Positions 27,642 to 49,263 of a DNA stretch of 64,000 nt are shown in pieces. The position numbers and the translations under genes were made by a program. The notes beneath the pieces were generated by a model that worked only from the letters and a program-made list of their open reading frames with translations, was not told the origin of the DNA and did not search any database. Origin of the DNA: Sminthopsis crassicaudata (lineage: Eukaryota); contig NC_133620.1 in the NCBI RefSeq assembly GCF_048593235.1, positions 451,203,261-451,267,260 of the forward strand, given 5' to 3'. Each line of letters starts with the position of its first letter. Within the stretch, counting starts at the first letter, position 1.

Positions 27642-30600
27642 CTACCAGTGCAGACCAGACGGGGGCGTTTTCTCATCCTTATTGCTCTCCAGGGAGAAGG
27701 GGGGAATTCGGACATCGAAGTGAGATCCATCGGGCCTCTCAAAGCGGAACGTGCCCCTAGAAGACAAGGAGGAATCCAGCTCAAGAAGACCTCTGTCCTG
27801 CACCCCTCATGCTATTAGGAACCCCACATTCTTGGCTCTAAAATAAGTATGGGAAAAAGCAGCAGGAAGGTCTCACCTTCCCAGCAGGGGGAGAGATACA
27901 GAAGTACACAAAGTGCTTAACCAATCCTCCTCCTCTACAGCAAACACGCCTCCTGACTGTCTGTTCAGGGGCAAAGGTTCTTAATCTGGGGTGCGTGATC
28001 TATTTTTTAAAATGCTATAACAACTGTATTTCAATGTAATTCTCTCCCTTTGAAGTCCCAGACAGTATATGCATTTAGAAACATGGTGGGCTTCCCTAGC
28101 CCTCCATAGGGGGCCTGCCCTGGATGCGGCCCCAGCCTTGGCCCTAAGACTCAAGTCAACTAGCAGGGCCTGGAAACCTGCCAAGAAGGAGCAGGTCTTG
28201 GGCCATCCTCCCCTCCCCCACTAGGACTCGCAACCAGTCAGCAGGAAGGCCCCCGAGCTGAGCCCAGGAGGGAGGACAGGACCCATGCTGATAGCTGTGC
28301 CTGGACAAGGGGTCACTCACCACATGTGCCCACTGGATGCCTGCAGGGAGACGTGGCTGCTGTACTGGAAAGCTGGCTGTTCTTTGGATAAGACAGGCTC
28401 CTGGGGGGTCCAAGAGAAACAGGCAGAATCACGGGAGGGCTCACAAACACGGAGAGAAGGAGCAGGGGACCCTCATACAGGCCCTGGCTCTCCTCTCTGT
28501 CCTTGCTGTCCACTTAAGCTAGCACGACCCTGAAGCCTCTACTGGAGCCTGCACAAAAGAGCATCTGGTGCCATTGCCTTTGGCCCCAGAGAGTTTTCAC
28601 CAAAGGAGCAGGCACGTGGTCCGCCCCGTCCAGGGGCAGGTGCCTCCCCTCGCCGAAGCTACACTGACCTGACCGACGGCTTCAGCGAACTCCTGACGAA
28701 CGGATGGACACGATCTCAGGAGCCAACCCCGCCCAGACATGGGCAAAGTGTCTGCCCAGCGCTGTCGCCCGGCTCACCGACACCCCCCAGCACAACTTAC
28801 GAAGAGGAAAGCGAACAGGAAGGACTAGGCTGGGGACCAGCCCGGGAGGGGGCTCCACCTTACCCTGCCCACCACACCTCGGCCTCGAACCGTCTCCAAC
28901 GTGCCCGACAAGCTGAATATCCTCCAGTGACGCTCCCGAAGCTGCACGACGTCACTGTCCAGGTTTTCCAAACGGATGCAGTAGCGCCACTGCCCAAGGA
29001 AAAGGCAGCTCAACGAGGGGACAAGGCAGCGGGCTAGCCCAACCCCCTCGGCCTCTTCCCTCCATCCCCCCACCCCCACCCTGGAGGCCCCATGGAAAAA
29101 AGCCACTTACCCAGTATACGTGGGAATTCTGGGCCTCCTGAGGAGAGAAGCACAAAGGTCATGAGGGTGGCAGTGGGGCGGCATCTGCTCAGGGCAGGCA
29201 CCAGGTGGGAGGCTGATGGCCCCTCCCCCAGTCCCTCAGGGACAGAGCCAGGAAAGGCGACCCCAGACCCCTCCAGACGGCATCACCCAGAGGCAGCCCA
29301 AGCTCCTGTGGCCGTGGGGAAGACAAAGTGCAGCTCGTGCAGGAGAAGGTGTCCCCCACCCCGGTGACCCCACGGCAGCGAGGCAGCGGGAGCCCGATGC
29401 CCCAGGGGCCACTCTGCTGCACACGGGAGGGCCGGACAACGGAAGCGGGGGCAGCCCCAGGAGAGGCCCCGTCTGGGGCAGAGGCCCGTGGCCCAGCTCT
29501 CGGATGCCCGGGGGACACGTACCCGCATACCCATGTAGAAGGGGATGACAGTGACACGGATGTTCTCGGTGGTTTCCCGGTGGACATCTGACAGCTCTAG
29601 CCAGGGGTGATTCTTCTCCTGCCAAGCACGAAGGGTCTCCCGAGCCACAAAGGGCGGAACTGGGAGAGGAGTGGACCCGCCAGCTGACCCGCGGGCTCTG
29701 CTCTCAGCCCAGCCCAGAAGGGTCTCCCCCTCCCCCACCCCGGGGACAAGCTCTGCGCCCGAGCCCCACTCGTCTCCTTAGGGGTCAGTACCTTTGGACT
29801 GCTCGTAGAGGAGAAACCTTTCAAACAGCTCATGCTGGATGGGGACCTGGTCAGTGGAGCTGTAGGGGAGGATGTCTTCATGGCTGACATAGTCCAATCC
29901 TAGGGGAAAAGCCAGAGGTGAGTGTCCAGCAGGGCAGAGCCGCCCAGTCTGGGCCCAGGGGGTCCTGGAGTCCCCGAGCCGAGGTCCGTGCCCCTCGCTC
30001 CCTGCGCCCCCTTCCTGTCGTTGCCACAGACGCCCAGACTCGGCTCCCAGCACAGAGACGCTCACCGAGCCCGGGGCCTGGGCAGCGACTCCCCTGAGAT
30101 GAAATCAGAACCAACAGGGGCTGAGCCTGCCCTCCCCGGGGGCTCCCTCCCAGTCTGAGAGGCCAAGGGGACCCCGACGCCTGCCCCCACCTGGTATGGC
30201 ATAGAGGGCTCGACTGTCATCGTGATTGGCCAGGAACGTCACAGCTTCTGTCTGGGATCTCTGAGACTGAGGAAGGGCAGAGTCAGAACGGGTCTCAGCG
30301 TGCCCGCGGGGTGAGGGGGCTTCATGTCCGGTCTCAGACGCAGGAGGGACTACGGCTCCACCTCCCCCCACCCCCCAGGCCCACCCACGGTCCCCCCACT
30401 TACTATGTGCGGGCAGTCCCGGGCATCGATCAGCACCTGGTAGTACGTGTGGGTTTTGCCTTTCACCTCCTTGGAGCCGTGGCCGGCGGGGTTCTCCGTT
30501 CTGGGTAGGAGACAGAGTTGTGATCAGGGCGGGCTCTGCGCCTGTCAGAGCTGAGGACACGGCCCCCGGGGGCTCCTCCCCCCTCTTCAGCGCCACCTGG

Positions 30601-32751
30601 GATCCCTCAGGCAGAAGCAAGGCCTGCAGGGGGCGCAGCGCGTGCTGCCAGGGCTCCTGTCTCTGTGGCGCTCGGCGCCCTCCTCCGCCACTCAGGGTGC
30701 CAGGGGATCACTGGGCCGGGACTCGTCACTAAGGCTCCTGCTCCCCGCGGACCCTCCCCCGGCCGCTCGTGAGGCACAAACGGGGCAGGAGACTCACTTT
30801 TCTGGCGCGCTGGAAGCCACGTCCCGGTCGTACAGCCTGGCCTGCCAGGGAAACAGGACGACCCCTCGGTAGCCGAATATGCTATGAAGGAAGAGCTGCG
30901 GGAGGAGGAGGGCGGTGAGCCTGCACCTGCTCGGCCCACCTCCATCAGCCCGAGCACTGCAGGAGACAGCCGCCCCTGGGGGGGGCGCCCCTCAAAGCCA
31001 AGCGCCCCCCCCCCCCCCCGCGGGCTCCTCAGTCCCCCTGCTGTCAACGCCCCGTCAGACTCTGGAGCGGGGCCTCCCCTCCGTCCGTCTCCCGGTCCTC
31101 CAGAGCCCATCCCCCACGCGGCTGTTCTGTCTCGTTTGGGCAGCTCAGGGGGCCCAGGATGGAGCACCCCCCCAGACACACCCGTGTGGGGCCCCGGACC
31201 AGTCACCTCGCCCCGGCTGGCTCAGTTTCCGGAGGAGACAACGGCCGACCACTCACATGCTCCCTCAGAGGTCACTGTGGGGACTCGCTCTGCTGACCTC
31301 CCCCTCCCACAGGCTCAGAGAACCGGGCCGATGCAGCGCCCCCTCCGGCCGAGCCCCCTCCGGCCGTGCTCCCCCCCCTACCCCACCCCGTTCCTCCCCC
31401 CCCAGCCGTGCCCACTCCGGCCGTGCTCCCCCCCAGCCTCCCTCCGGCTGCCCCCCCCTCACCTGGCCTGTCTCGTATTTTCCGTTCTGCTTTGGCACCT
31501 CGAAGACACCGACTGTTTCCAACACTTTGCCCTCTGGTCGGTTTCTGAGAAGAAGCCACAAAGTGAGCAGTGGGGGGGAGGGGGGTCCACCATCAGGAGA
31601 CATTCATGGAGACCCTGAGCTTAAGGAATGAGCAGGAGGCAGCTGCCCGCTAAGGGGCTTTAAAGTGCTGGGCCCGAGTGGGGAAGATCCGAGTTCAAAT
31701 CCCGCCTCAGACCCTGACTGGCCGAGACCCCGGCAAGATGCTTCACCTGCCTGCCTCAACTCCTTTAACTGCAAACGGATGGCAGGGTTCCCGTGAGGAC
31801 CTGCAGACTGCCCTCCACACTCCCAGGCCGGCCCTCGTTCAGTGGGCCTCACTCTCTCACTTCTAGTCCTGCACCCGCAGACCCCAGAAGCTCCCAGGCG
31901 TCTTCATCAGGAGTCCAGCCCCACCCCCCACGGGGGTCCTTCTTCTGCGGACACATTGGCTCCTGCGCTCCCAGTTACTGGCTGACATCTCTCCTGGTAA
32001 CGCGGTACCTGGGGCAGGGCCGGCGCGGAGGGGGCCATGTCGGCGGGCTCTGCACCTGTTTGTTCTCCGCACCCTGAGGGCACCGGGCGGCCAGGCCTGG
32101 GCCCGAGCCTGGCGGGCCTTTAACAAACGCTGCGGGCTGACTGCGCGGCCGCACACGCTAATGGGGGTGGCTCACGAGGGCGCAAGCCTGCTGTTCCAGG
32201 ACCCTCCCCCCGAGCTCCCTCCCTGGGCCCGGCGCGGCAGGCGGGCTGGGGCAGCCGAACTTTCTGTGACTCTAAACCTCAAAGCTAAGCTGCTCCACCT
32301 GCCGCTCCACGGGCCCCGAGAGGAGAAAGCGGGCCCTGCCCGAGGGGAGCTTCCGCTCGGCCTGACCATCACCGAGGGCTCCCGGCCCGGGCTGGGCGCC
32401 GTGCAGACGGGAACGGAGGCGGAGAGTCTGCCCCGGGGCAGGGAGCGCTAACAGGCCGGCCGGCTCCCGCTCCCGCCGGGCTCACAGGCTGCCCTCGAGG
32501 AGCTCACATCCGCCGGCCCCGGAACACAAATCCCCGAAAACTACTCCTCAGGGAAGGGCGCCCCCCCCCCCCCCCCCGCTCTGCCCCCCTCACCGGGACG
32601 AGAGGTGTCTCCGCGCCGCGGCCGAGGCCGGGGGCGCCGGGGGGAAGGTCGCGAGGGGCCGCAGCAGCCGAGCCCCCGCCAGCGGCCGGGACCACCAGCA
32701 GCAGCAGCGGCCGCCCACGGCCAGGGCCCGTCGGGCCACACAGCCCGCCAT
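27642..32751 (-). CDS. POLDIP2: Polymerase delta-interacting protein 2 (YccV-like + ApaG/DUF525 domains), 367 aa, 11 exons
   Basis: complement(join(27642..27756,28321..28400,28864..28989,29111..29137,29523..29659,29792..29899,30191..30266,30404..30500,30798..30895,31463..31544,32594..32751)) = 1104 nt, all GT-AG. Translation MAGCVARRALAVG...RNRPEGKVLETVGVFEVPKQNGKYETGQLFLHSIFGYRG...WRYCIRLENLDSDVVQLRERHWRI...DEKTPPSGLHW. Confidence 0.97.
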
Positions 32752-33480
32752 GTCGGCGCCTGGGCCGCCGCGGACGCGCGGACTCAGTCACGGTCACAGA
32801 GGCGGACGCCGACGCCGATGAGGGGCCCAGCGAGCCGCCTCCGCCGCGCCCCGCCCCCGGCCCACAAGGCCCCGCGCGCCGCTCTCCGCCCCGCGTGCCG
32901 CAGCCGCTCTAGGCCTCCCCCGGAAATTCTAGGCGGCTCCGCCTCCGATCACCTGACACCGCCCGGCCCAACATGGCGTCCTCCGTGCGCGCCGGGGAAC
33001 GGCTACGGCGGGGCCTGAGTCCCCGAGGGGAACTGGAGGCGGCGCACCTGCCCTGCGGCCTGCGGGCGCGGCTGGAGGCGATTCTAAGAAAGAAGAAGGC
33101 CTCCGGGGGCGAGGGCGACGACCCCCGGCCCTTGGTGCCCTTTCATCTGCTCCGGGAGCTGCGCGTGCACCTTAGGGAGCAGGGTGAGCGCGCCCCCAGC
33201 CCGCGCGGGAGGCAGATTCCGGGGGGACCCTGCTCGACCTAGTGTCGTATTTCACCGGAAAACTAATTTCTGATTCTGAGGAAGGGTCTTAGCTGGTGCA
33301 GGGTCCGAGCCCGAGTCTGGACCCACCCTGAGGCCCCGCCCCCTTCGCGCCCCCATCTCTGCACCAAACCAGCTTCCGCCCCCCCCCCCAGCCTTGTCTC
33401 TGGGGATCCCCGCGCGCCGCGGAGGCGAGAGCGTTTCCTCAAAACCAGGGGTCCGGCTCTGACCGCCCGCTCGTCCTCTC
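32000..33480. promoter_or_regulatory. Bidirectional CpG-island promoter of POLDIP2 (-) and TMEM199 (+)
   Basis: Divergent ATGs at 32751 and 32973 are only 221 nt apart. The region is CpG-dense with GC boxes, an ETS-like CCGGAA (~32920) and ATCACCTGAC at 32948-32957. Confidence 0.85.
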
Positions 33481-36400
33481 CGAGGGTCCTTCTGCGTGAA
33501 GGGGCACAAAAGTAACCAACAAGCCAATTATTAGCTGTTCCATAATCAGCGGTCCCCGATTTGTCTTGGGTTCTCTGCCTCCGGGGGAAAGGCCTTTGGA
33601 AAAGAAGCTCAACCTCCCAGGACTAAAGTCAGGCCTGCCACTTTATCCGAACCTAATTTAATTTGGCCCTCGGGCTGCCCCGGCTGAGCGGGGTGGGGGG
33701 GGGCACTTCTGAGAGGGGCCCCCATCCCTCTGCGGGTCACAGCGCTAACCTTGCTTTTCCAGACACTCCTCTCTTCCTCCACGAGCTCCTGGAAGGCAGC
33801 GAAATCTATCTGCCCGAGGTGGTGAGACCCCCCAGGGTATGTGACCGAGGGCGCTGGGGAGGGGGCAGCGAGACCCCCCAGGGTATGTGACCGAGGGCAG
33901 TGGGGAGGGGGCAGGGAGACCCCCCAGGGTATGTGACCGAGGGCAGTGGGGAGGGGGCAGCGAGACCCCCCAGGGTATGTGACCGAGGGCAGTGGGGAGG
34001 GGGCAGGGAGACCCCCCAGGGTATGTGACCGAGGGCAGTGGGGAGGGGGCAGGGAGACCCCCCAGGGTATGTGACCGAGGGCAGTGGGGAGGGGGCAGGG
34101 AGACCCCCCAGGGTATGTGACCGAGGGCAGTGGGGAGGGGGCAGCGAGACCCCCCAGGGTATGTGACCGAGGGCAGTGGGGAGGGGGCAGCGAGACCCCC
34201 CAGGGTATGTGACCGAGGGCGCTGGGGAGGGGGCAGTGAGACCCCCCAGGGTATGTGACTGAAAGGTTTGGGGAATTGGGGGTGGAATCTATCTGATGCC
34301 AGTGGCGAGACCCTCACGTTAGCCACTTGAGCTTCTTAGTTGATTCTTTTCGGACAGTGGTCCTCAAACTTTTTAAGTAGGGGCCGGTTCCCTGTCCCTC
34401 AGACTGCTGGAGGGCCGGACTATAGTAAAAACCAAAGCCTCGGCTTTGAGAACCCCTGATTTAGGAGAAGGAAAGAGGCCGAATTTGACCCTTTCTACAC
34501 AGAGAAAAATCTAGACTTAGAGAGCCCGAGTCACCATCACACTTGCAGCAAAGGAGTTAGCTCTAGAACACAGTGTGAGAACTGGAAGCCGCTTTGGGCG
34601 GCTAAGGGGATCCGTGCCAGTTTGTCCGGCCTGTTTGTCTCCCTAGAACCCAGAGCTGGTCGCCCGCCTGGAGCGGATCAAAGCGCGGCTGGCCAACGAG
34701 GAGTACAAGAGGATCACCAGGAACGTGTCCTGCCAGGTGAGGCTGACTGCCCGCACCCTGTGCCCGAGGGAGGAAGCAGCCCATGGCTTCTGCCTCCTCT
34801 CAGAGATTTCTAATCCGAGGGAAAAAAAGCCACAAAAACCACATAGTTAAACCTTATTTAGAGACCAGTCGGTCGTAGCTCTGAAAGAAAACCATTTCAG
34901 CATTAAATCTTACCTTCTTCAAACAGGAGTTCTTTAGCTTCACTCAGGACACAGCCATGGATGGATTAAAAAATTAATCTAAAACAACTGTGCACCTGCA
35001 TACATGTATTGTATTTAATTTATACTCTAACATATTGAACATGTGTTGGTCACCCTGCCATCTGGGGGAGGGGGGAAGGAGGGGAAAAATTAGAACAAAA
35101 GGTTTGGCAATTGTCAGTGTTGTAAAATTATCCATGCACATATCTGGTAAATAAAAACTATAATTTAAAAAAAATTCATCTATCAAGTTGATGGTTCAGA
35201 CTGGACAAAAGCCAGCTGGGTGGAGCTATGGAAATAGGTGGAGTAATGTTCCCAGTGAATTCATTGTAGAAGAATGTGGCACCAGGAAGGGAAGGGAGCT
35301 CTATTTCTTTTTGGTCCCTGGAGATCTGTTTTAGCCACTAGAGGGCTCTGCAGTTAGAGAATAAAGGATGCCATTTAAAAAAAAATTTTTTTTTAACTGC
35401 TGGTTTCTTAAAACTACACTGTAGGGGGCAGCTAGGGCGCGCAGTGGATAGAGCACCAGCCCTGAATTCAGGAGGACCCCAGTTCAAATCTAGTCTCAGA
35501 CACTTAACACTTCCTAGCTGAGTGACCCTGGGCAAGTCACTTAACCCCAGACTCAGGGGAAAAAAAGAAAAAAACACCGTAAGATAACCAGAGAATGTTC
35601 TATCCCCCTTTCACAGATGAGAAGACTGATTAGGGAAATAGGTTTATTTAAAAGAGGGTGTCTGCATGCAAGGATCTTCCATTCTAGTTTACCAAGTACT
35701 TTCTTCACGATTCTTTAACGTGACTCCCACTTCATGGGTGAGGAAGCGAAAGCCCAGAAAGGCCAGTTCTTCAGCAGCAGCAAAGCAGGGGGTCAGAATC
35801 CAGATCTCCTCACCCTTTCTCCCTCTCCCAGCTGCCTCACCGCTCTCAGCTGGCAACTGTCCAAGGTGGTGTAACCGGAGTCAACTGATGCTTTAGTAAT
35901 GGCTCATTAGAGAATGGCCCAGCTTCTCCAAACAGAAAAGGAAGTCCAGTTCACCTTTGGAGGCAAGATCTGGGACAGAGCCCCCTGCTGTGTACCAGGC
36001 CTGGGAGTTGTGTTCTGGCCCACAAACCCTGACCCGATGATTTGATGGTAGATAGGAGATCTGTAATCTCCCCCCAGGTGTCAGGCTGGGGAGAAAAAAT
36101 TAAAGTTGGCAGCAAGGAGGAGGGTGAAGGTGTCCTGTCCCTGTCTGAACGGACAGATGAGAACCCCTGAGGTGCCTCTGCTGTGCCATACCACGCGCCT
36201 TTTCTTCTCCCCAGGCCCTGAGGCAGGAAGGCAACCTAGCTGACTTCGGACGGCAAGGTGAGCTCTCTGAGAAGGCACGGGGCGGGAAGCTAGAGTCCCT
36301 CCCTAGGGCCCTGCCCGTCCCCCCTGAGCATCCCTTGAGCTCTCGGAGGGGGAGGGGTTGCCTGTGTGCACACAATATGAAGAGGAGAACAGTCCTCCAG

Positions 36401-37476
36401 GATATGACACCAACCTTTCTGTCCTGTCTCCCTTTGGCTCCCAGTGAGGTCGGTGAAGGCAGTGATCATCACCATCTTCAACTTCATCGTCACTGTGGCA
36501 GCAGCTTTTGCCTGTACCTTCCTCGGAAGCCAGTACATCTTCTCCGAATTGACCGCGGTAAGTGGGCACCGGGCTGCAGGGGCCGTGTGGCAGGCTGAGG
36601 GCATGGGAGGAGGGTGACAGTCGAGCCTTCAGGTGAACAACACATAAACATGCACATAAAAAATTAGGGCGAGGGGCAATCCCGAGAGAAACTTGGCCTC
36701 CTGCTGCCGTTCTCGCATTTCCTGCTCAGACTCCGAAAGGTACCAAAAGCTGCTCTCTCGGGAGAGAGGAAAGTCTCCTTCACCCTGTGTAATGTTCTGG
36801 TTGGTTTTCTGCAGGTCTTGGGATCAACCTTCCTTTCAGCAGATTTAATCACCACAAGAATAGTCAGGTGTTAAAGTCCAAATTCTTTATCTCCTTTCCA
36901 GTCTGTTTCCTTGCCTGGGCCTGGGCCAGCTTTCTTGAGGTCCTCTGGAACGAGTCTTGGTTTCTGTGGGGGAGGCAGGAGGACCGCCTCCTGTGCTCCT
37001 GTCTTTGTCTTGAAGTCAGTCTCAGTCCCAAAGCCTGTGCTCCAGCCCCTAGTCTTCTGTCCCCTCCGAGTCTGTCTCTGGCTCAGACGGGCCTCGGTCT
37101 CGGTGGAGAAGTGGAGGAGGACAGGTCTGCCGCCACGGTGGTGGGAGATGAAGTGACTGTCTCTGGCTGAGTTTGTCCCAGCTTATGTGCTCTGTTATAA
37201 TTACATCGTCGTAGGGAGTAGGGGTCAGTCTTATAGAGCTATACTAAGTACTAAGAACGTGTACTGTACTAAGCACCATGCTAAACTAGATAACCATTGT
37301 CTTTATCAGTTCCACTGACTTAACACCTTGTTCCAAGTACAGAGTTCTGGCCCATAACAACCCCGTGTTTTCTCTCCCAGAGGGTGCTGGCTGCGGTGAT
37401 CGTGGCCTCCGTGGTGGGTCTGGCTGAGCTCTATATCATGGTCCGGGCCATGGAAGGGGAGTTTGGAGAGCTATAA
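32973..37476 (+). CDS. TMEM199: V-ATPase assembly factor TMEM199 (Vma12/Vph2 homolog), 208 aa, 6 exons
   Basis: join(32973..33183,33763..33836,34647..34736,36215..36257,36445..36557,37381..37476) = 627 nt. Translation [11 protein letters not shown]...[52 protein letters not shown]...[16 protein letters not shown]...[26 protein letters not shown] at 39014-39019. Confidence 0.96.
33824..34260 (+). repeat. 46-bp GC-rich minisatellite (9 full units plus a partial 10th) spanning the TMEM199 exon 2 / intron 2 boundary
   Basis: Unit GAGACCCCCCAGGGTATGTGACCGAGGGCAGTGGGGAGGGGGCAG(C/G). GTATGT occurs at 33837, 33883, 33929, 33975, 34021, 34067, 34113, 34159, 34205 and 34251. Confidence 0.97.
34975..35173 (+). 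mobile_element. 5'-truncated L1 3' end
   Basis: Marsupial L1 3'UTR terminus (...CTGCCATCTGGGGGAGGGG...AATAAAAACTATAAT) followed by an A tail. Confidence 0.75.
35424..35573 (+). mobile_element. CORE-SINE (WSINE1-like), younger G-tail subtype
   Basis: Full body with GAATTC, ending ACTCAGGGG plus an A-run. Confidence 0.88.
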
Positions 37477-37751
37477 CCCCTGAGAGCCACTCAGATCCCA
37501 GGCGGGTTCCAGGAGGCCCCGGGAGTGCTGCTCAGCCCAGCTTCAGGACCCCAGGTCTGCCTGCCAGTCCCCAGTGCAGGGCAGACCTCCTCCGCACATG
37601 GCCTTGTGGTAAGGTCCAGGGAAGAGGGCCGGGGCTGCTCTCATCCCCATATCGGACCCACGTCCCCACACGCAGGACTAAGATGGTATCCGCTCAGACT
37701 GAAGAAGAACACAGCCTCTGGCCAGGACCTTGCAGAAGAATTGGTTTTTCA

Positions 37752-37897
37752 GGGTAGTTTGATGGAGCAGTGGAGCAGTTCTGGCCTTAAGGGCAGGAGG
37801 ATCTGAGTTCATATCCAACCTCAGACACTTAAGACTTCCAGCTGTGTGACCCTGGGCAAGTCACGTAACCCCAATTGCCTCAGTAAAAAGAAAAAAG
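37752..37897 (+). mobile_element. CORE-SINE in the TMEM199 3'UTR, older subtype
   Basis: Diverged body ending CCCCAATTGCCTCAGT plus A-run. Flanked by AAGAATTGG(T/C)TTTT direct repeats. Confidence 0.8.
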
Positions 37898-39447
37898 AAT
37901 TGGCTTTTTATGACCTTAGTTTCTGCCTTTATATTGACCTTCAGATTTCTTCTGATCCTTCCTCTTATCCACTTCGTGTGTCTGTATCTGTTCCCCTGCC
38001 TTAGGTGTCTTTTAGGCCTCCTGCCTTCAAATCACTGTGTCTTCTGCTTCCGAGGATGGGGGAAGGGGAGGCAAAACCTGGTCTAGAACTCCCTGCTCTG
38101 GCTCCTCTTGTGTTCAGAGAAAATCGCTTCAGGGAATCTTCTCCACTCTGAAAAGAACACACAGCCACTTTTGCTTGGATGCTTGTTTTGAAAAATGTGA
38201 ATTTGTCCCACTAAGACGGACACATTCGGGAACAATTTGAGCCCAGATTTTGTTTGCTTAGGTTTCAGTTTACCTGACAGAAAACTGTGCCTCTTCAGGA
38301 TAGTTCAAAAGCATCCACCCTTCTACCACCTCCTTCCTCAGGCAAACTTCAGGTCTTTTTCAAGGTGAAGTGCCCTATATCTACGGTGCAAGGGGAGCTT
38401 TGGGCTGAGGAGGACTGCTCTCTCTCTCTACCTCTTCTCCCATCTTCCTCTCTGGGCAAGACCTACCCCTAGTCCAGGAGTTTCCATCCACTGAAACCCC
38501 AGAAGCAACTGGGCTCGGCCAGCCTGGGCCCCATGAGATCTGCAGGCGTCACTGCTATTTATGTAGTATTTATGTATTTCTTAACTATTTTTATTAGATT
38601 TCCTATCTCTGTGTGTGTGTGTGTCTGACTGGGAAGTTTTTGAGTGTTGTCCTTCATGCCATTTTTCCATAAACTCTGGTTTTTATTGCAAGATTTTTGC
38701 ATTGCATTGTGGTTCTTGGGCACATATGTCAAAGAGAACATCTTTTGTGTATGCTGTGTGTAATATAGCCTTTATGGTTGCTTAATGAATGAGAAATGAT
38801 GTGTGTGTGTAATGGACTTATGTGTGTATATACAAAGGGTATTCTTAAAGAATCGTTCTTACCCTATTACCTAAGAAGGCTCCCATCAATAAGAAGACAT
38901 TAACTGTTCTGCACTCAGAGTTGATCTCAACGAAGAAATTTCTGTCCTTAAATGCTGTCTTCAGCATTTTTTGTCATGTTGCGTTAAAGTTTATGTAATC
39001 TGTTAAAAGTTTAAATAAAAACTGTCCAAAGATGTTTGGATGCTTAGCTCATCTGGGCTCCCGTTCCCAGAGGATTGTTTTATCACTGAGCACCTGTAGT
39101 GTCCTGAGGTCATCTAGGGTACTGTGAGGGGAGTGATCCTCCAGTCTCCATTCCTGGTCCTCTTGACCTGACTTTGTCCCTGGGCTACCCAACTGCCGTA
39201 GCTTCTGCACCCTCACCTTCGTTTCTGAATTGTTTCCTCTAAACTGAACCACTGTCCCCGCCCTCCGCCACCTTCTGGGAAGGGAGAGGGGGTTCTGATT
39301 TTCACAGGGAAAGTGCTTCCCCCCCAGGAGAGAGGGCGGCCCCCAGCACTGGTGGGCCTGTGATCCACCATCCCCATCCAAGATCTCCAGGGGAAGGAGA
39401 TCAGAGGAAGGTATTTCCTTTGGCTTCAGTTGAAGGAAGCCAAGGCA

Positions 39448-39592
39448 GGGGCAGCTAGGTGGCGCAGTGGATAGAGCACCAGCCCTGGATTCAGGAGGAC
39501 CCAAGTTCAAATCTGGTCTCAGACACTTAACACGTTCTAGCTGTGTGACCCTGGGCAAGTCACTTAACCCCAGCCTCAGGGGGAAAAAAAAG
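39448..39592 (+). mobile_element. CORE-SINE (WSINE1-like), younger subtype, 13-bp TSD
   Basis: TSD GGAAGCCAAGGCA at 39435-39447 and 39593-39605. Confidence 0.92.
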
Positions 39593-40916
39593 GGAAGCCA
39601 AGGCAGCTTGTATGTGTCCCCCCTGTGGGGTGTCCTTAGGGTTCACAAGGACTACAGAAGGTAATAATGGGAAAAGACATCCCTGCTTTTCTTCAGACCC
39701 ACCCAGCAGAGCCCTGACCTCTCTGATTAAACATCCTCCCAAGTCCCTTCCAATATTAAGGGATCTGTGCTATAACCTGGCCCTATTAAGGGATTAAGCA
39801 GTAGAACAAGCTCCCAGGAGGCCCCATCCCCACCACCCCCCAGCCACTCATTTGCAAAACAGCTCCAGATTAAGGTAGAGGAGCTCAGTTTTATTTGGGA
39901 GATTAGTTGGTATTACAGTTGATGGATGGGCTGAAGCACACTGCCCTCCCTTTCCCATACCCCCTTGTACATAGGATCCTCTAGCTGGTGTCAGGTGGGC
40001 CTTGGAGCAGGGGTCAGAGCACTTGTGATTCAAATCCTGATAAGCTCAGCCCTGGATTTCTCTTTATTACTTTAATAATATTCCCTCTGCGGGGAAAAAT
40101 GATATTTTCTCCCTCTGGTCCCAGAAGTGCCAGGGTCTAGATTAATTTGTCCAGTGGGGGTGGGGGTCAGGATAGGGATGTAGGAAGGGGAGGTTAACCC
40201 TCTGTGAACTGGACCACAGCATGCATGGACCAGCTGCTGGCAGCAGCAGCCGGGAAGCGGAGAGATGGGGAGAGCATTCTAATTGCCCAGCTCTCTCTGC
40301 TTACATTTGGATTTTAATTAAGTAATGTCGGGGAGGGGGTGAGAGGGAAGTGGACATCTGCCTTCAGAGAGAGCAAATGTAACTGGATGGGGGTGGGGAG
40401 TCAGCCAGGGAGGGTTAGCCTGGCCTGGGCATGGAAGTGTCATCCCAAAGGACCCCTCCTCACCCAGTCCCTCCCAGAGGGATCTCTCACCAGCCGTTGT
40501 CCCGCTGCAGGAACAACGGGCATTCCATGTTTGTCGTATGTGGTGCTGGGGACTCCTTTGGTGCATGGATTGGGCTAGAGCTGCTGAGGCCCCGGGCGAT
40601 GGGAGGGTCAGTGTCACAGGTCTATGTTCCAAGGATGTTCCCCCCTTAAGGGATTAGCCCCCGCTCTACTCATACAGGCATCTTTAGGTGTCCCCCTGGC
40701 TCTCCATATATATTTAGTCCAGCTCTCCCTTCTGGACCTTGGAGGGGATGGGAAAAGGAGAAAAGAAACCCAAGGCAGACCTTACCCTCTCAGGTAACTC
40801 TTCTGTAGGGCAGGGGGTTGAGCAGGGATTGGCTACTGATGTGGACGGCTCCCACAGAGTCAAGGGGAAAAAAGTTCCTCCCGGGGAGAGAGAAAAGGAA
40901 AGGGCCCACGTCCCAG

Positions 40917-42310
40917 TTAGGCGTCATCCAAGTTGGTGACAATGGCCGCGTTATAGATGAGGTCGGAGAGGCTGCCCAGAGAGGTCTGGCTGGCAGCCCG
41001 TTCCCAGCGGCTGAGTGGCCCCGGAGGCTTGGGCATCCCACTAGGTGGGCCTACCCCGCCAGGGCCCAGTACCTTGACCCTCATGGCACCGTGACCTGGG
41101 GCCAGACCCGGTGTGGGACAGTTGGGGTCCCTGTCACGCGGAGAGGAGTGTCCCCAGCTCTCAGGGTCCTGGGGGCGCAGAGGATTATGGGCCGGAGGCA
41201 GAGTTCGCCGTGGCTCCTTGGTCCAGGAGCTCAGTCCTTCGGGCTTCCTGCTCTTGATTCTCCGAGCCCGGCGGTTCTGAAACCAAACCTGGGAATGAGG
41301 AAGGAGAATCAGTTCCAGCTTCTAAGTCCATTTCCAGAAAGAAAGGGGATAAGCCTCACAAAGCAGAGTCTGAGGGCCGAGTGGCTGGGACCCCGGAGTC
41401 CTGCTTCCCAGCCCTTGGAAGGAGGCGGGAGGAGGGCAGGCAGAAAGGGCAGGAGAGGCAGCTTCACCTGGATTTTGGCCTCGGGAAGACGCGTGAGCCG
41501 GGCCAGCCGCTCTCGGGTGCCGATGTCTGGGTAGGGCCGGGCAGCGAACACCCTCTCCAGCTCTAGCAGCTGCCCCCTGCTGAACGTAGTGCGTTTCCGA
41601 CGGCGGGTGCCGGGCACCGGAGCCCGCCCTGGAAAGAAAATAGCGTTAGGGTAAAAACTAGGGCTGCTCTACTCATTCATCTCCACACTGGCTCCCTCTC
41701 CTCCAGTTCCCTCTTCTCCCTTCCCCCTTCCCCTAATTTTTCTCTTAATCTTGAAACCCACCCCTAAATTCTCCCACTGTTTCCACTTTCTCTCCTATCG
41801 TTCCCCTCCATCCATCCAAACTCTCACTTCCTTTTTCAACACCGATCTCCCTTCACCTTTCCCCCTTTGAACTCCTCCTGATGTCCCACTCCCATTCCCA
41901 AGCCCCTCCTTCCCAATCTCCCTGCCACCCTCCCATGCAAATCTCCCCATCTTTCCCCTTCAAGCCCCAGTCTCCCGGTCCTTTCTATCCAACCTGTCAC
42001 TCTCCTCATTTACTCTTCAATCACTCAACTCCCTTTTCCTTTCCCAATTCTCCAAAATTTCCCATCATCCCTCCCAACTCTATATTCAGTCTTCTCTGGC
42101 TCCCTCCTTAATTTATCCACAAAAAGCTATTTTTCCTGCCTCCCCTCTTCCCTCCTACTCCCATCTTGTCCCCAAACATCCCAATCTCCCCCAACTTCCC
42201 TCCTCTCTCTGCTCCCCTTCAGCCCCACCTGCCTCTGAGGTATCCATTGGAGGCCGAGAGATTGTTTCTCCTGCTGGGGAGTCGAGCATTGAGTGGAGGA
42301 GTCTGGCCAT
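40917..42310 (-). CDS. SEBOX: SEBOX paired-class (Q50) homeobox protein, ~204 aa, 3 exons
   Basis: complement(join(40917..41288,41468..41628,42229..42310)). Homeodomain [46 protein letters not shown]|[12 protein letters not shown] and C-terminal SEBOX-like motif [23 protein letters not shown]. Position between TMEM199 and VTN fits. The start codon is less certain: in-frame ATGs at 42310 (good Kozak, first ATG after a CATAAAA box at ~42428-42434), 42289 and 42247. Confidence 0.9.
41690..42210. repeat. Pyrimidine-rich low-complexity tract filling SEBOX intron 1
   Basis: ~520 nt almost devoid of G on the + strand. Confidence 0.8.
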
Positions 42311-44294
42311 GACCGAGGGTCTGCCCTGAGCTTTTTGGGAGGTCTGACCCAGCAGAGATCCCAGAGGTTCCTCCTCCACTGTCTCTCAGCCCCGGACAAC
42401 TGAGCTAGGTCCTCCCCCAACCCTGGCTTTTATGCTGCTCAGCCGAGCCCTGCCCCGCCTCTGACAGTGCCTGGGATGCTCTGCAGCTCTGGCCCTTTCC
42501 TAAGGCAAAGCTCTCTGGTAGGTGGGAGACCCCAGGAGCCTGAGTCTGAAGGCTGGAGCGCAGAAGAGGCGAAGGGAACTGGGGGCTTAGGGGTGGCTGG
42601 AAGTGATGAAGGAGTTTAGAGGAAGGGGGACTCCCTCTCCCTCTTCTCCCTCGCACCCCAGCTTCTCCAAAACCTCTGCCTAATTGCTTCACCACCCCCT
42701 TCAGGAATCAGAGCTAGCAGTGATAGAGCTCTCAGAGATTTGCAAGCACTTTACAGATATTCTCCCATGAATCCTCACAACAACCCTATTAGGGAAGCGC
42801 TGATTTTATCCTCATCCTGCAGCCGGGGTCCCCAGAGTCACGCGGCTGAGGAAGTAATCGAGGCAGGCTAGAAACTCCTGCTTTCCAGCCCTCCAGTCAA
42901 AATATCAATATACACACTACCTCCTGCCTAATAGCTTCCACTTCTAAAGCACTTTGAAGTTCACAAAGCTGTGTGTAGGGGGAGGAGGGGACGGCGTCTC
43001 ATTTGATCTTTGCAATATCTCTGCTCAGTAAGTACCACTGGGACCCCCGTCTTACAGAGAAATGCTTATTGACTGACTGGCTGATAAAGAAACTCAGCCA
43101 CCCCATCAGCTTCAGCCTGGCTTGGCTCCCCATCACTCCCCTGAAGCTGCTCTTTCTCAGCCCCACAGGGAGCTTGATCACTGAGTCATCCTCCTTGAGC
43201 CCTTTTATCCCCCCTAAAAAGCTGCTGCTGCCATCTAAACTTCCCTTCATCACCCATGACAATACCATCCTCCCTGGCACTCAAAACCGTGCGGCCTCTC
43301 TGACTCCTTCCTCCCATCATCCATTTGAAGGGTGGTCAAATGGCCATCTATTTGAAGTCATGGCCACACAAATAGAAGCCAAAGGGGAGGCCTAAACCCA
43401 TTAAAGTCTGATTTAATGTCCAACGCGCCACCCTTATGTTGTTTTCCACTTTTTCCCTGGTTGATAGCACACAATAAGAGCTTAATAAGTGTTTGTTGAC
43501 TTGACTATAGCAAAGTTACTCATCAGTGTCCTTAGGGATATAGATTTATGACTGGAAAGGACCTTAGAGTGTATCTAATCCAACCACCTCATTTTACAGA
43601 GAAGGAAGCTGAAGTTAAAGAGAAGAAGCCCTAAATCACAATTAATAAGTAATGGAGACAGGATTTGAATTCAGCTCCTTTACCTACAAATCCAATGTTC
43701 TTTCCACTATGGCATATAGTCTCCACACTCTCCAGCTGCACAGCCCTCCCTCACTTACATTTAATTCACTGGCATGTCATGGTCCTCTTAGAGAACGAAG
43801 GAAAAACAACAAAAGAACCCTTGATTTGGAATCACCTCAATCCGAATCCCAGGTCAATATTCAAAGCTTACGCAACCTTGGCCACTCATCTTTCCTTTGA
43901 GGGAATTGGGCTTTGATTATCTCCAAGATCCTTTCCAATCCTAAATCTCTAATCTTGTCAATCTGCAGAAAAATCCCAAAGAGCATAAAATCCAAACTCT
44001 CTAATTTTCTCAATCCAGCCCCAAGCTACCTAATGAGCTCTCAAATTTAGACCTGAAACGGATCTTAGCAGTTGTCCAGGTTGAACTCCTTCATTTCAAA
44101 CCATGTTCAAACCAGCAAAGCCTTTGCCATTCTTCCTGATTCAGTCCAAATTCCTGCCTCCACACAGCCCTCCCTGAAGCCCCTTGGCCAGAGGGAGTGT
44201 GTGGAACTTTAGGTCAAGTGAAATAAGCTGCTTGGAAGAGTGGGTAACGCGTCGGACTTGGAATCGGGATCCCATGTTCAAATTCTATACATTA

Positions 44295-44460
44295 ACATAT
44301 ATTTTTAACATATTTAACATGTATTGGACTGCCATCTAGGGTGGGAGGAAGGAGGAGAAAAGTTGGAACAGAAGGTTTTTCGAGGATCAGTATTGAAAAA
44401 TTAGCCATACATATGTTTTGTAAATAAAAATAAACAAACAAACAAATATATAAATAAATA
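44295..44460 (+). mobile_element. Short L1 3' end nested in a MIR/CORE SINE
   Basis: L1 terminus with an (AAAC/AAAT) tail. TSD AATTCTA(T/C)ACATTA at 44281-44294 and 44461-44474. Confidence 0.8.
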
Positions 44461-45959
44461 AATTCTACACATTACTAATTGTGTGACCCTGGGTAAGTCA
44501 CTTGATCACACTCAACTTCAGTTTCTACAGCTATAAAATAAAGGCTGATCATTTGGGAGCACTGACTCTAGGTAGGTCTCCCTCAGCTCCCCACCCACGA
44601 TGGGCATCCCCCCTGACACCCCTTGAGGATGTCACCTCATAACTCCCAGAGTTGTTCTGAGGAATAGATGCATAAAGCACTTCATCAGCCTTAAATCACT
44701 ATGTAAATATCACTTAACATCAAGGGTTATTTTTAAAAAACAGGTTGGGTTTGATTTTTACCTTTTTTTGCTGTTGTTTTTGGTTGTTTATCTGAGTAGA
44801 TGAAGTGAAGAGGGTATTGAAGGCTCACATAAGCAAAGGTCAGAGTGGGGCACACGATGGTGGGGAAGAGTAATAAATTTGGTTTGGAGAGGTATCTTAC
44901 CTCCTTCTCAAAATGATAAACTTAGGAAATCTCTGAGAATGGCTTTCTTCGGAAGTTAGAGGAAAGACCCTATTGAGAAATGGACAATGTTATAAAAACA
45001 AAAGCTATCAATAATATTAATAATAATAATGTGTTAATTTAATAACAGTATAATAATAATGAAAGCAATTTAGTAAAGTAGCATGGTAGTAATAATAATA
45101 ATAATTTATCAATAGTAACAAAAGTTTGTGGTATTACATTAGCTTTCATATGATAGTTGCTAAGGAAATGTTTATTGATCAGAAAGAAGAGGTTTGACCA
45201 TAGCACTCTTTCTTGGGATAGAGCCTGGATCTAGATTTCACTGGTACAAAATAGTGATGTTAAATTGAAACACAAAGGGATCACTGCAGAGCACATATTA
45301 ACTTAGAAAACCACAAATTAACATTATCTATGTTGTGTTATAATTTTATTTTTGTTAAACATTTTCCCAACTAACTTTTTAATCTGGAAAAAAGGAAAGA
45401 TTAGAGATACTAAGTTTGGAGGGGCTGGGGTAAAGGGGACCAGGGATGAGAAGGGTAGGAGGATGCTCATACTCCGTAAGCTCATTAGATATCCAGGAAT
45501 GCTCTTCCTCTATTCACAGAACCACCCTGATAAGGATTCCAGGTCCATCGTGTCTTCTTGTTTCCATAGCTGCCACATCTCCTGACTGTGGACCTTGCTA
45601 GCCCTCATGGACACCAGCTGATGTCTTTTCCAACACAGATCCATCACCTTCCCAGAATTCATAGAATCTATCTAAAAGGAACTTCAAAGCACATCTTGTG
45701 CAACATGTAGCCAAAAAATAATTTCCCTCTTCAGTATTCTCAATAAGTGGTCATCCAGCCTCTATATGAAAATCTCTTGTCCATCTGGGGACAGCTGTCC
45801 TTGTTGGGGGCTTTTGCCTCTTACATCCCTTGTTTCTCTCTGGTTCCAAAAGGGAACAGTTCAGGATTCCTCTTGTACAACATGATGGCTAACATTTATA
45901 AAGCTCCTACTGTGTACTAGGCATTGTGCTAAGAGTTTTACAATTATATATTACATTTG

Positions 45960-46103
45960 ATTTTTTTTTTCCTGAGGCTAGGGTTAAGTGACATGCCCAG
46001 GGTCACACAGCTAGGAGGTGTTAAGTGTCTGAGATCACATTTGAACTTGGGTCCTCCTGAATTCAGGGCTGGTGCTCTCTCCACTGCACCATCTAGCTGC
46101 CCC
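45960..46103 (-). mobile_element. CORE-SINE (younger subtype) inserted in a MIR
   Basis: TSD TACATTTGAT at ~45952-45961 and 46104-46113. Flanks at 45890-46240 are MIR-like. Confidence 0.88.
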
Positions 46104-46995
46104 TACATTTGATTCTTACAGCATTATTATCCCCATTTTATAGATGAGGAAACTGAGGTATGATTGAAGTGACTTGCCCAGGATCCCACAGCTAGGAAAT
46201 GTCTGAGGCTGGATTTAAACTCAAGTTCTCCTGACTCCTACCTCACTACTCTCTCTTCTGCATTAACCATTTCAACATTCTGAATGTTTTAAAACAGTCT
46301 CCAAGTGGCCTCTAGAGTAAACAAATATCTCATTTCCTCCCATGCATGGTCTCAAGGCCCCCAGGGTCCGTGATGTAGTCACTCCCCTGATTGTTCTCCA
46401 ACATGATAAAATCTTTCTAAAACGGCAACGTTCTGAACAGCCTCTCTCCTGTCCTTCTCAGGATCACCCCCGGAATCCTTGACCACCAAGACAGAGGACA
46501 CCTCGGTATACAGAGTACAGAAGAAAAACAGTGGCTCTCCCTCCCTGCTTTGTTGAGATGGGAGATCATGGATATGGAACTGCACGGACTGTGCAGTCTG
46601 AGCTGTTGTTCCTCCTCCGCTGCCCTTCTCTTTCTTTTGTATTCTTTGCTACAAGGGAAAAAACTCTTTGGGGGAGGTCATAGAGATATGTGAAGATGAT
46701 TGTAAAAATAAGATAGCAAGAGCACGGCAATCCACATCGGTGATTCCTGCTACAATGTAGGTTGAAGCAAACAGATTGTTTGGACTTCTGAGTTCTGAGC
46801 TCCAGGGGGACTGAGCCCATCTGAGACCCCCAATCCATGTAGTATCGGTATAGTGAAGACACTAGGAGGAGGATTTTGACTAAGGAAGAGTTAACAGAAA
46901 CAGAACAGACCAAAAATCCCATACTGATCAAAGCCTGTAAGCCCCTGCACTTCCTCCCAAATATATACATATTGTGTATCTTAATATTAGAAATA

Positions 46996-47607
46996 AACTA
47001 AGATCATGGCAACTAGTCCATCCCTTCTGGAACACAAGAGAAAGAAATGGAAGCAGCGTCAGATTTTACATTCTCGGGCTCAAAGATCACTGCAGCCATG
47101 AAATTTAAAGATGTTTGCTCCTTGGAAGGAAAACAATAGCAAATCTGGACAGCAGACTAAAAAGCAGAAACATCACCTTGCTGACAAAGGTCTGTAGAGT
47201 CAAAGCTACGGTTTTTCAAGTAGTGTGTGATGGGGGGCTTGACTATAATCTGGGCACTGGAATTGACTCTTTCAAATTGTGAAGAAGACTTTTAAGAGTT
47301 CCTTGGACATCAAGGAGATTGAATCAGTTAATATTTAAAGAAGTTAATTCAGACTATTCACTATTCAGACTATTGAAGCTGAAGTTTAAATATTTTGGCT
47401 ACATAATGAGAAAGGGCCCTGATTCTGAGAAGGATCGAAAGCAAAAGGAGGAAGGAAGGGGAGAGGAAGAGATGGATAGTGTCATAGAAGCAACATGCGT
47501 GAACTTAGACAGACTTTGGGAGATAATGGAGAGAGAAGGGCCTGGTTATGGACCATGAGGTCATGAGATTGAGAAGAGTCAGACATGAGTGAACAACTTA
47601 ACAATAA
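46996..47607 (+). mobile_element. RTE/BovB-like LINE 3' fragment (degenerate RT C-terminus plus tail)
   Basis: ACTAAGATCATGGCA...GGGCTCAAAGATCACTGCAGCCATGAAATT...CTCCTTGGAAG...GTCAAAGCTACGGTTTTTC...GAGTCAGACATGAGTGAAC matches the BovB/RTE 3' ORF and terminus. Followed by a (TA)/(TG)n microsatellite to ~47662. Confidence 0.8.
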
Positions 47608-47626
47608 TGCACGCATACATATACAC

Positions 47627-47664
<38 letters not shown>

Positions 47665-49263
47665 CCCCTGCCCCAAAGGTATGGGACTCTCTTATTTATG
47701 GAGATTAATGCCTGTCCTGTGTAAGGGATAAGACTGAGTTGCTGAGAGAATGTCAGTTACCAATCAGTCTCCTTTGAGTCTCTTTGGGGGCTTTTCAGGA
47801 TCAAGTCCCCATTTAGGGACTCATCAAGCATTAGACTCTTCAAGTGTCCAATTTTGGAGACTTCTGCTCCCAACTTCAAGAGAAAAGATAGAGGAAATCA
47901 ATCCCACTTCAGGATGCTGGGAAAAAATGCTTGGGATATTAGGAGAGCTGGTGGTCTCCATCATGTCCTTATTCCCAACTTGTTGCTCTAGAGATTTTAG
48001 GAAGTTTCCCTTTGGATGAGAACCAGGACCATTACTCAGTTGAACTGATTTATCTTATTCCCAATATGAGAGCCCTTTCATTCTGTATAGTCTAGTATGA
48101 ATGTTTATGGGTGTGTATGTGTATATATATGTTTATAGTTTATATATACTGATTCTCTGATTAGTTTTGTTAAAATTTTCATAAATGGGTTTGTTTGCTA
48201 TGTCTATTCATTGAGGAACTGCTAGTTGGTGGGAAAGGCATCAAGCCTGGGATATAGACTTTGGGATCCTTCTTCCCCATACCTTGCCAGAAACCAATTC
48301 AAACCCTATCATATCCCCTACATTAATAATATTTAAGGGCACAAATAAATATACGTTAGCTCATAAGGAGATCAGAGAGCAGCCTCTGGTTCCGACTTCT
48401 TGCTCCCCTCCTGGCAGGAATGAAAGTCTCCCTTGGAGAAGGATGGAGGGAAAAGAGGCTGTAGATGTCTCCGCTGCCTCCTTTGGAGATACATGACAGG
48501 TTTTGCCATCTGTGAGTCCCTATCTACACATAGGGCTCAGCTCTCTCCCTACAGATAAGTAGATATAGATAAATCTCTGTGTACATATATATATCTAGAT
48601 GCAATTACATACATATATACAAGTACAGTATGATTTGTATAGCATTTGTATAAGTGCTTTACATATGTTATCACATTTGATGATCTCAAAGATTCAGTAA
48701 GTAGATGCTATTGTTATCACCATTTTACAGATAAGAACATTGAGACTAGAAGTTTGTTAAGTGACTTGTTTAAGGCCATACACAAAAGCTGAAGTCTGAG
48801 GCAGATTTGGACACGCAGCCCCTGACTCTAAATCCAATGTCCCATCCACCAGCAGTTATGTGGTTCAGGGGTTAGAGCACCAGCCTTGGAGCCAAGAAGT
48901 TTTGAGTTCAGATTTTGCTTCAGACAGACACTTGTGAGTTGGGTGACTCTAGATGAATCATTTAACCCTGCGGTGTCTCATATTTCTCATCTGCAATATG
49001 GGCTGGGGGGAGGGGTTGGACTCAGTGGCCCCAAGGTTCCCTTTGAGCTCCAAATCTATGATGGATAATAATTTAGAAAAGCATTACATAGGCCAAAAGG
49101 ATTTTATTAAAAGCACACACCATAATAGGGATAATTTTCCCTTTGAGCTTTGTACGCCTAGCATACAAAGGTCCCTGAGCATGGCAGACCTTTCATAAAT
49201 CCTTGTTGGATTGGATCTGGTCTGAGAGGATCCCCAGGGGTGCTTGGGCTGTGACAGTTGAGT

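Follow-up and report, generated by a model that had tools for sequence, protein, structure and literature searches.

The 64,000-nucleotide stretch of the fat-tailed dunnart Sminthopsis crassicaudata analysed here (hereafter the window; forward strand of contig NC_133620.1, positions 451,203,261 to 451,267,260, assembly GCF_048593235.1) carries the gene TMEM199, whose exon 2 ends in a 46-bp minisatellite that presents the exon's own 5' splice site (donor) ten times. Six coding exons on the plus strand, delimited from stop-free stretches (Table 1), translate exon by exon, all in order and with 0 mismatches, into NCBI S. crassicaudata TMEM199 isoform X1 (P0130, 208 aa), and window positions 29973-49482 are identical to the locus of that protein in GCA_048593235.1, CM109184.1. 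The exons were searched singly, and the database protein P0130 was used in place of a joined spliced model; starting from the exon 1 peptide, it was reached by a representative search, a word search with the best full-length match, and a cluster look-up. Exon pieces match the Pfam family PF11712 (Vma12) collinearly, at profile positions 20-47, 68-99 and 107-130, with single-piece scores of 19.4, 23.8 and 15.7 bits that each stay below the 25.5-bit cut-off. P0130 is full-length and identical to the exon model, and the representative of its cluster (P0041) carries PF11712 and the NCBI name TMEM199. Together with the gene neighbourhood described below, these matches uphold the assignment to TMEM199/Vma12 made in an earlier note, which had been written from the letters of the window. 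TMEM199 is an assembly factor of the vacuolar-type ATPase (V-ATPase), and its loss in humans causes a glycosylation disorder, as that note states.

With a period of 46 in 9.5 copies (97% matches, no indels), the array at 33824-34259 scores 809 in Tandem Repeats Finder and is the sole tandem repeat with a score of at least 150 in the window. Unit 1 is composed of the last 13 nt of exon 2 and the first 33 nt of intron 2. Within the window, the 18-mer CCCCCCAGGGTATGTGAC has exactly ten copies, whose GT lies at 33837+46n (n = 0 to 9). The repeat report and the 18-mer count agree with the earlier description, in which a 46-bp unit holds the end of exon 2 with a full donor and nine identical extra donors follow at exact 46-nt spacing. 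Variation among the dunnart units is confined to CGCT/CAGT and to the final base (C, G or T), and the tenth unit continues into diverged sequence. Beyond it lies a 3' flank, CACGTTAGCCACTTGAGCTTCTTAGT (34313-34338), common to all three dasyurids compared below. By itself, the exon 2 relic at 34286-34313 in the last unit is within chance expectation (score 25 vs a shuffle maximum of 32); it is accepted as a copy of exon 2 because the orthologous Antechinus and Sarcophilus units align with it. Overlapping the donor, every unit also has an acceptor-like CCCCCCAG/G; its pyrimidine tract is just six C's, and a unit acceptor combined with the donor of the next unit would define a 46-nt pseudo-exon.

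Table 1. Features of TMEM199 and its donor array in the window (positions are those of the window; a slash marks a splice boundary or the matching peptide junction, here and in the text).
Feature	Position	Strand	Remarks
Coding exon 1	32973-33183	+	
Coding exon 2, 74 nt	33763-33836	+	Residues 72-95 of P0130; acceptor ttttccag/AC; last 13 nt GAGACCCCCCAGG (33824-33836) open repeat unit 1
46-bp minisatellite	33824-34260	+	9 full units and the first 23 nt of the tenth; coding strand G-rich, GC skew +0.34
Donor 1, AGG/GTATGT, authentic exon 2 donor	33837-33842	+	Needed for the VVRPPR/NPELVARLE junction
Nine pseudo-donors	33883-34256	+	GT at 33883, 33929, 33975, 34021, 34067, 34113, 34159, 34205, 34251; identical to donor 1 from -9 to +9
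In-frame TGA	33888-33890	+	Terminates donors 3-10 and intron retention
Last, longer unit, oldest	34238-34329	+	Donor 10, diverged G-runs, relic of the 3' part of exon 2 AATCTATCTGATGCCAGTGGCGAGACCC (34286-34313), then 3' flank
Coding exon 3	34647-34736	+	Residues 96-125 of P0130; Vma12 profile positions 20-47; single acceptor open to all ten donors
Coding exon 4	36215-36257	+	
Coding exon 5	36445-36557	+	
Coding exon 6	37381-37476	+	

The reading frame was walked exon by exon for each donor, with the stop positions as output. Donor 1 leads to the protein of 208 aa. Use of donor 2 lengthens the exon by 46 nt (frame +1) and leads to a stop at 36241-36243 in exon 4, which lies 127 nt ahead of the last exon junction, so that by the usual 50-55-nt rule this transcript is eligible for nonsense-mediated mRNA decay (NMD). 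Donors 3-10 and retention of the intron all end at the same TGA after 112 aa. The walk thus confirms what had been proposed earlier, namely that read-through of donor 1 meets this TGA, that use of donor 2 is a 46-nt frameshift and that every later donor gives a truncated or NMD-type transcript: all later donors give a premature stop. The array was also considered as coding sequence and rejected, as nine times 46 nt make 414 nt, divisible by three, yet the frame meets the TGA at 33888.

The proteins bear on which donor is used. The junction VVRPPR/NPELVARLE is invariant in 12 marsupial TMEM199 proteins and is present in both dunnart isoforms, X1 and X2 (P0097, 183 aa). In dunnart, antechinus and devil, none of the NCBI protein models is an alternative-donor isoform, and no transcript-derived dasyurid fragments were found in the protein collection searched with dunnart residues 97-208, where the best match was from platypus and 82% identical. 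The invariant junction shows that productive mRNA needs donor 1; silence of the later donors does not follow, as gene models lean on homology.

The predicted energy of the U1 duplex is -7.0 kcal/mol for all ten donors. The G-runs that the earlier note had placed after each donor are indeed there, with the same set of G3, G3, G4 and G5 behind every one, and runs of at least three G number 41 in the 437-nt array vs 6 in the remaining 386 nt of intron 2. Four canonical RNA G-quadruplex motifs (four G-runs of at least 3, loops of 1-7 nt) are predicted, one per unit ending in CAGG; with loops of up to 12 nt there are 37 predicted matches, which overlap. The minimum free energy of the array is -211 kcal/mol, whereas 100 shuffled sequences average -245 (z = +5.1), i.e. 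the array is less stable than shuffled sequence. A hairpin or other structure that masks the later donors is not supported and was rejected, as the array folds worse than the shuffles. Since U1 pairing is equal, the G-runs are equal and there is no stable fold, donor 1 would be singled out by its position, as the first site after a 74-nt exon. Apart from the array, a cryptic donor-like GTG/GTGAGA is present inside exon 2 (window 33819-33827, GT at 33822), with a predicted U1 pairing of -8.1 vs -7.0 for the authentic donor; putative use of this GT would drop 15 nt in frame and give a protein of 203 aa.

The array was compared in dunnart, Antechinus, Sarcophilus and Dromiciops, with Dromiciops alone as outgroup; Macrotis, Monodelphis, Vombatus, Trichosurus, Petaurus and koala were not included. 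Antechinus flavipes has an array at the same exon boundary, with a 47-bp unit in 10.1 copies and 10 intact AGG/GTATGT donors. The array of Sarcophilus harrisii, the devil, again at this boundary, is built of 38-40-bp units in a 78-bp super-unit, in 12.6 copies. Copy number across the three genera, with a single dunnart assembly in the comparison, is thus 10 in dunnart, 10 in Antechinus and about 13 in Sarcophilus. In Dromiciops gliroides the segment occurs just once, within an intron of ~170 nt, with GGGGGAGGGGG already present after the donor. Unit identity within dunnart, Antechinus and Sarcophilus is 0.92, 0.96 and 0.89, compared to 0.75-0.84 between species, and each dasyurid array carries species-diagnostic changes, unit 1 included. 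This excess of identity within species indicates that the units evolve in concert within each dasyurid lineage. In the unit consensus, nt 1-19 (the 13 exon nt and GTATGT) are identical in the three dasyurids and Dromiciops, and the remainder differs at 6-12 of 27-28 positions.

The three-species alignment shows the last dunnart unit, with its exon 2 relic (AATCTATCTG...GTGGCGAGA) and the 3' flank, to be orthologous to Antechinus and Sarcophilus units. Two or three more relics of a longer, ~70-80-nt unit are held by Antechinus and Sarcophilus, and the last devil unit retains the 46/47-nt form. Given this orthology of the terminal unit and its flank across the three dasyurids, a repeat is older than the Dasyurinae-Sminthopsinae split, and thus than crown Dasyuridae. 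This split is dated to 20.6-28.6 million years (My) across analyses (PMC5715987). On the older side, the origin of the array is bounded by Dromiciops only.

The exon 2/intron 2 boundary of the devil (L003:3739-3760) has AGG/GTGCGT as its first donor, 11 later copies of AGG/GTATGT and one further copy that is disabled (GC). Either the authentic donor of the devil has drifted from its own copies, or there is an assembly error at that place. The later donors have equal or slightly better predicted U1 pairing than the first (-7.3 vs -7.8), and the models still use the first, which fits position rather than strength. One NCBI TMEM199 model of the devil (P0069, 240 aa) has in addition a 32-residue insertion between exon 1 and exon 2 residues (~97-128 nt), which has nothing to do with the exon 2 array and looks like the use of another donor for exon 1.

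The explanation that we favour, and hold to be fairly probable, is that of an intronic minisatellite which is tolerated, evolves in concert and is spliced at its first donor, of the type known from intron 7 (intervening sequence 7, IVS7) of human F7. The F7 unit of 37 bp is present in 5-9 copies; splicing takes the most upstream donor alone, and pseudo-sites become active only after the sites upstream of them have been destroyed (PMC1557585). For TMEM199 we infer that a 46-nt segment (13 nt of exon 2 and 33 nt of intron 2), with G-runs already present in the single-copy ancestor, was duplicated in tandem, the likely cause being slippage or unequal exchange within a stretch that is rich in G, GC-skewed and ~850 nt past the start codon. 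The duplication would have taken place in the ancestor of the living dasyurids, with a ~70-80-nt unit first and the shorter 46/47-nt unit taking over later, and the units have since been homogenised within each lineage. The first site met in the 5' to 3' direction, by exon definition or scanning, would win and close the 74-nt exon 2, and productive mRNA would come from donor 1 only. The nine later donors would be identical, probably competent pseudo-sites, either silent or used at a low level, and their products with a premature stop would be removed by NMD. The array itself would be neutral, tolerated and not employed as a regulator.

Several points weigh against this explanation. Gene models are partly built on protein homology and would pick donor 1 anyway, and donor use is read here from such models. 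Of the five TMEM199 donors, that of exon 2 pairs most weakly with U1 (-7.0 vs -9.0 to -11.6 kcal/mol), so that competing sites may displace it more readily. Splicing from the first donor alone is not a universal rule either: the first two of 25 pseudo-sites are used in human IFI6 (6-16), as are two pseudo-sites in human CBS intron 13 (PMC1557585), and in human ABCA7, where the donor of exon 18 lies within a 25-bp variable number tandem repeat (VNTR), one-unit retention amounts to ~2% and rises with cycloheximide (PMC5954066). The F7 paper notes the opposite outcome of another group's duplicated-donor experiments (PMC1557585). Among the dasyurids, ~10 intact donors persist in each of three lineages 17-29 My apart, and the donor 9-mer deviates less among units than the other columns (3/279 vs 42/1121, Fisher p=0.02, with events that are not independent). 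Persistence and low deviation of the donors could point to selection on the copies themselves.

Weak pairing at the authentic donor, the lowest in TMEM199, is also one of the grounds for suspecting a leaky array that acts as a dial, an alternative put forward in the earlier note that found no support here and that we regard as unlikely. Donor 2 and perhaps later donors would then be measurably used and give NMD substrates, and repeat length or the level of the heterogeneous nuclear ribonucleoproteins (hnRNP) H/F would set the amount of productive TMEM199 mRNA. The ten donors are alike in sequence and downstream G-runs, and every alternative product is NMD-eligible, both of which would suit a dial, and IFI6 and CBS make constitutive use of the two donors that follow the authentic one. 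The absence of an alternative-donor isoform from the protein models of the three dasyurids speaks against it, as do the fully silent pseudo-sites of F7. ABCA7 cuts both ways: cycloheximide raises the one-unit retention of ~2%, and both expression and next-exon skipping correlate with VNTR length, but one-unit retention, i.e. use of the second donor, is independent of repeat length, whereas exon 19 skipping and total expression are length-dependent (PMC5954066). Moreover, the near-equal copy numbers in three genera (10, 10 and about 13) give no hint of a dial that varies between species.

It is quite improbable that selection keeps the dasyurid array (>20 My, three lineages, donor half unchanged) as a U1/hnRNP-H platform or as an NMD-coupled valve setting TMEM199 output. 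If this were true, TMEM199 would provide the first case of a boundary-spanning donor minisatellite with a demonstrated function and conservation between genera. A selected platform in the strict sense, with sites for the U1 small nuclear ribonucleoprotein (snRNP) and hnRNP H/F in a promoter-proximal intron that would aid the weak exon 2 donor through unspliced copies, is very doubtful; in a variant, the cluster of donors and G-runs could aid transcription or guard against premature termination. The 19 nt identical in the unit consensus of three dasyurids and Dromiciops, next to a variable rest, would agree with a platform, but constraint on unit 1 alone (coding and splicing) plus homogenisation gives the same pattern. 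Likewise, the ~10 intact donors retained per lineage have to be set against the GC copy and the drifted authentic site of the devil, and against Dromiciops, which manages with one copy; the other marsupial genes are shorter. A distance of 851 nt between array and ATG, with the array bordering a CpG island, speaks for a platform, but intron 2 contains no AATAAA or ATTAAA that would need suppression. An assembly artefact in the dunnart array or its copy number, for which 437 bp of 46-bp repeats beyond the span of short-read contigs would leave room, is extremely improbable, since two other genera, each assembled independently, show arrays at this exon boundary too, with unit variants of their own, and the dunnart units show ordered internal variants (CGCT/CAGT; final C/G/T) and not a featureless collapse.

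The neighbours of TMEM199 are a head-to-head upstream gene with YccV-like and DUF525 domains and, downstream, a homeobox gene and a Somatomedin_B/Hemopexin gene, presumably the neighbourhood POLDIP2-TMEM199-SEBOX-VTN. The upstream YccV-like/DUF525 neighbour was found at 6 of 7 other marsupial TMEM199 loci, with no neighbour listed for Petaurus. In the dunnart this POLDIP2-like gene occupies the minus strand at window 29973-32751 (L001:1-2779) and shares with TMEM199 a GC-rich CpG island (GC 0.69-0.78 and CpG observed/expected 0.74-0.95 over 32000-33499). The NCBI gene range of dunnart TMEM199 (L001:3001-16510, window about 32973-46482) extends ~9 kb beyond the stop codon, over the opposite-strand homeobox gene, because isoform X2 swaps the last exon for a distant one; X2 shares exons 1-5 with X1, differs only in the last exon and ends in SELTADHPRNP. 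A run of 132 N (gap or masked) is found at window 54702-54833.

Arrays of identical donors are natural experiments on the choice that the spliceosome makes of one 5' splice site among equals, and to our knowledge the few that have been studied are all from human genes. TMEM199 adds a comparative series, with arrays that evolve in concert in three dasyurid genera and a single-copy outgroup. This comparative result, i.e. the array in three dasyurid genera, its concerted evolution and the single copy in Dromiciops, is new here. The devil, with a drifted first donor against eleven copies, allows a test of position versus strength in a living species. A donor array could matter for V-ATPase assembly if leaky; nothing here shows leakiness.

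Intronic G-runs are splicing enhancers bound by hnRNP H/F. TMEM199 resembles such systems in that a rather weak donor is followed, 10-40 nt downstream, by G3-G5 runs, which the single-copy Dromiciops intron already has. It differs in that the G-runs are multiplied along with the donor, so they cannot alone mark the first site.

The arrangement as such had been taken as new in the earlier note; this did not hold, as the class is described for human genes (PMC1557585). The TMEM199 array belongs to this class of boundary-spanning donor minisatellites (F7 IVS7 type), having a unit of minisatellite size, the exon end and authentic donor in unit 1, and identical later donors. ABCA7 intron 18 (De Roeck et al. 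2018, PMC5954066) resembles it in that the repeat includes a splice donor, the donor of the next unit giving a frameshifted NMD substrate, and is the nearest published form of the idea that a VNTR tunes productive splicing; it differs in its 12 to several hundred C-rich units and in that length acts on next-exon skipping and expression, not on repeated-donor use. The dial is thus an idea already published for ABCA7, by another route than repeated-donor use. The 12-nt unit of IFI6 keeps the frame and adds residues, whereas the 46-nt unit of TMEM199 never yields an open frame. The IFI6 12-nt and CBS intron 13 minisatellites also start at the exon-intron boundary and reiterate the donor (25 pseudo-sites in 6-16, 15-20 repeats in CBS), and differ in that the first two pseudo-sites are constitutively used (PMC1557585). 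In human LMNB2 (100 bp, 10-15 copies) and PDGF intron 4 (81 bp, 16-18 copies), a boundary-spanning minisatellite again reiterates the donor, and only the authentic one is used (PMC1557585). The units of both are longer than that of TMEM199. We know of no comparative data on these two minisatellites.

In F7 intron 7 (Borensztajn et al. 2006, PMC1557585), first-donor use was shown experimentally with 50 constructs and the array is polymorphic, whereas usage in TMEM199 is taken from gene models only. Both first monomers span the boundary, with 4 nt of exon and 33 nt of intron in F7 and 13 and 33 nt in TMEM199. Both arrays present identical donors (5-9 in F7, 10 in TMEM199) to one downstream acceptor, and in both the later donors mostly lead to premature stops. 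The donors themselves differ, UGG/gugggu in F7 vs AGG/GTATGT in TMEM199, and the TMEM199 array is common to three genera.

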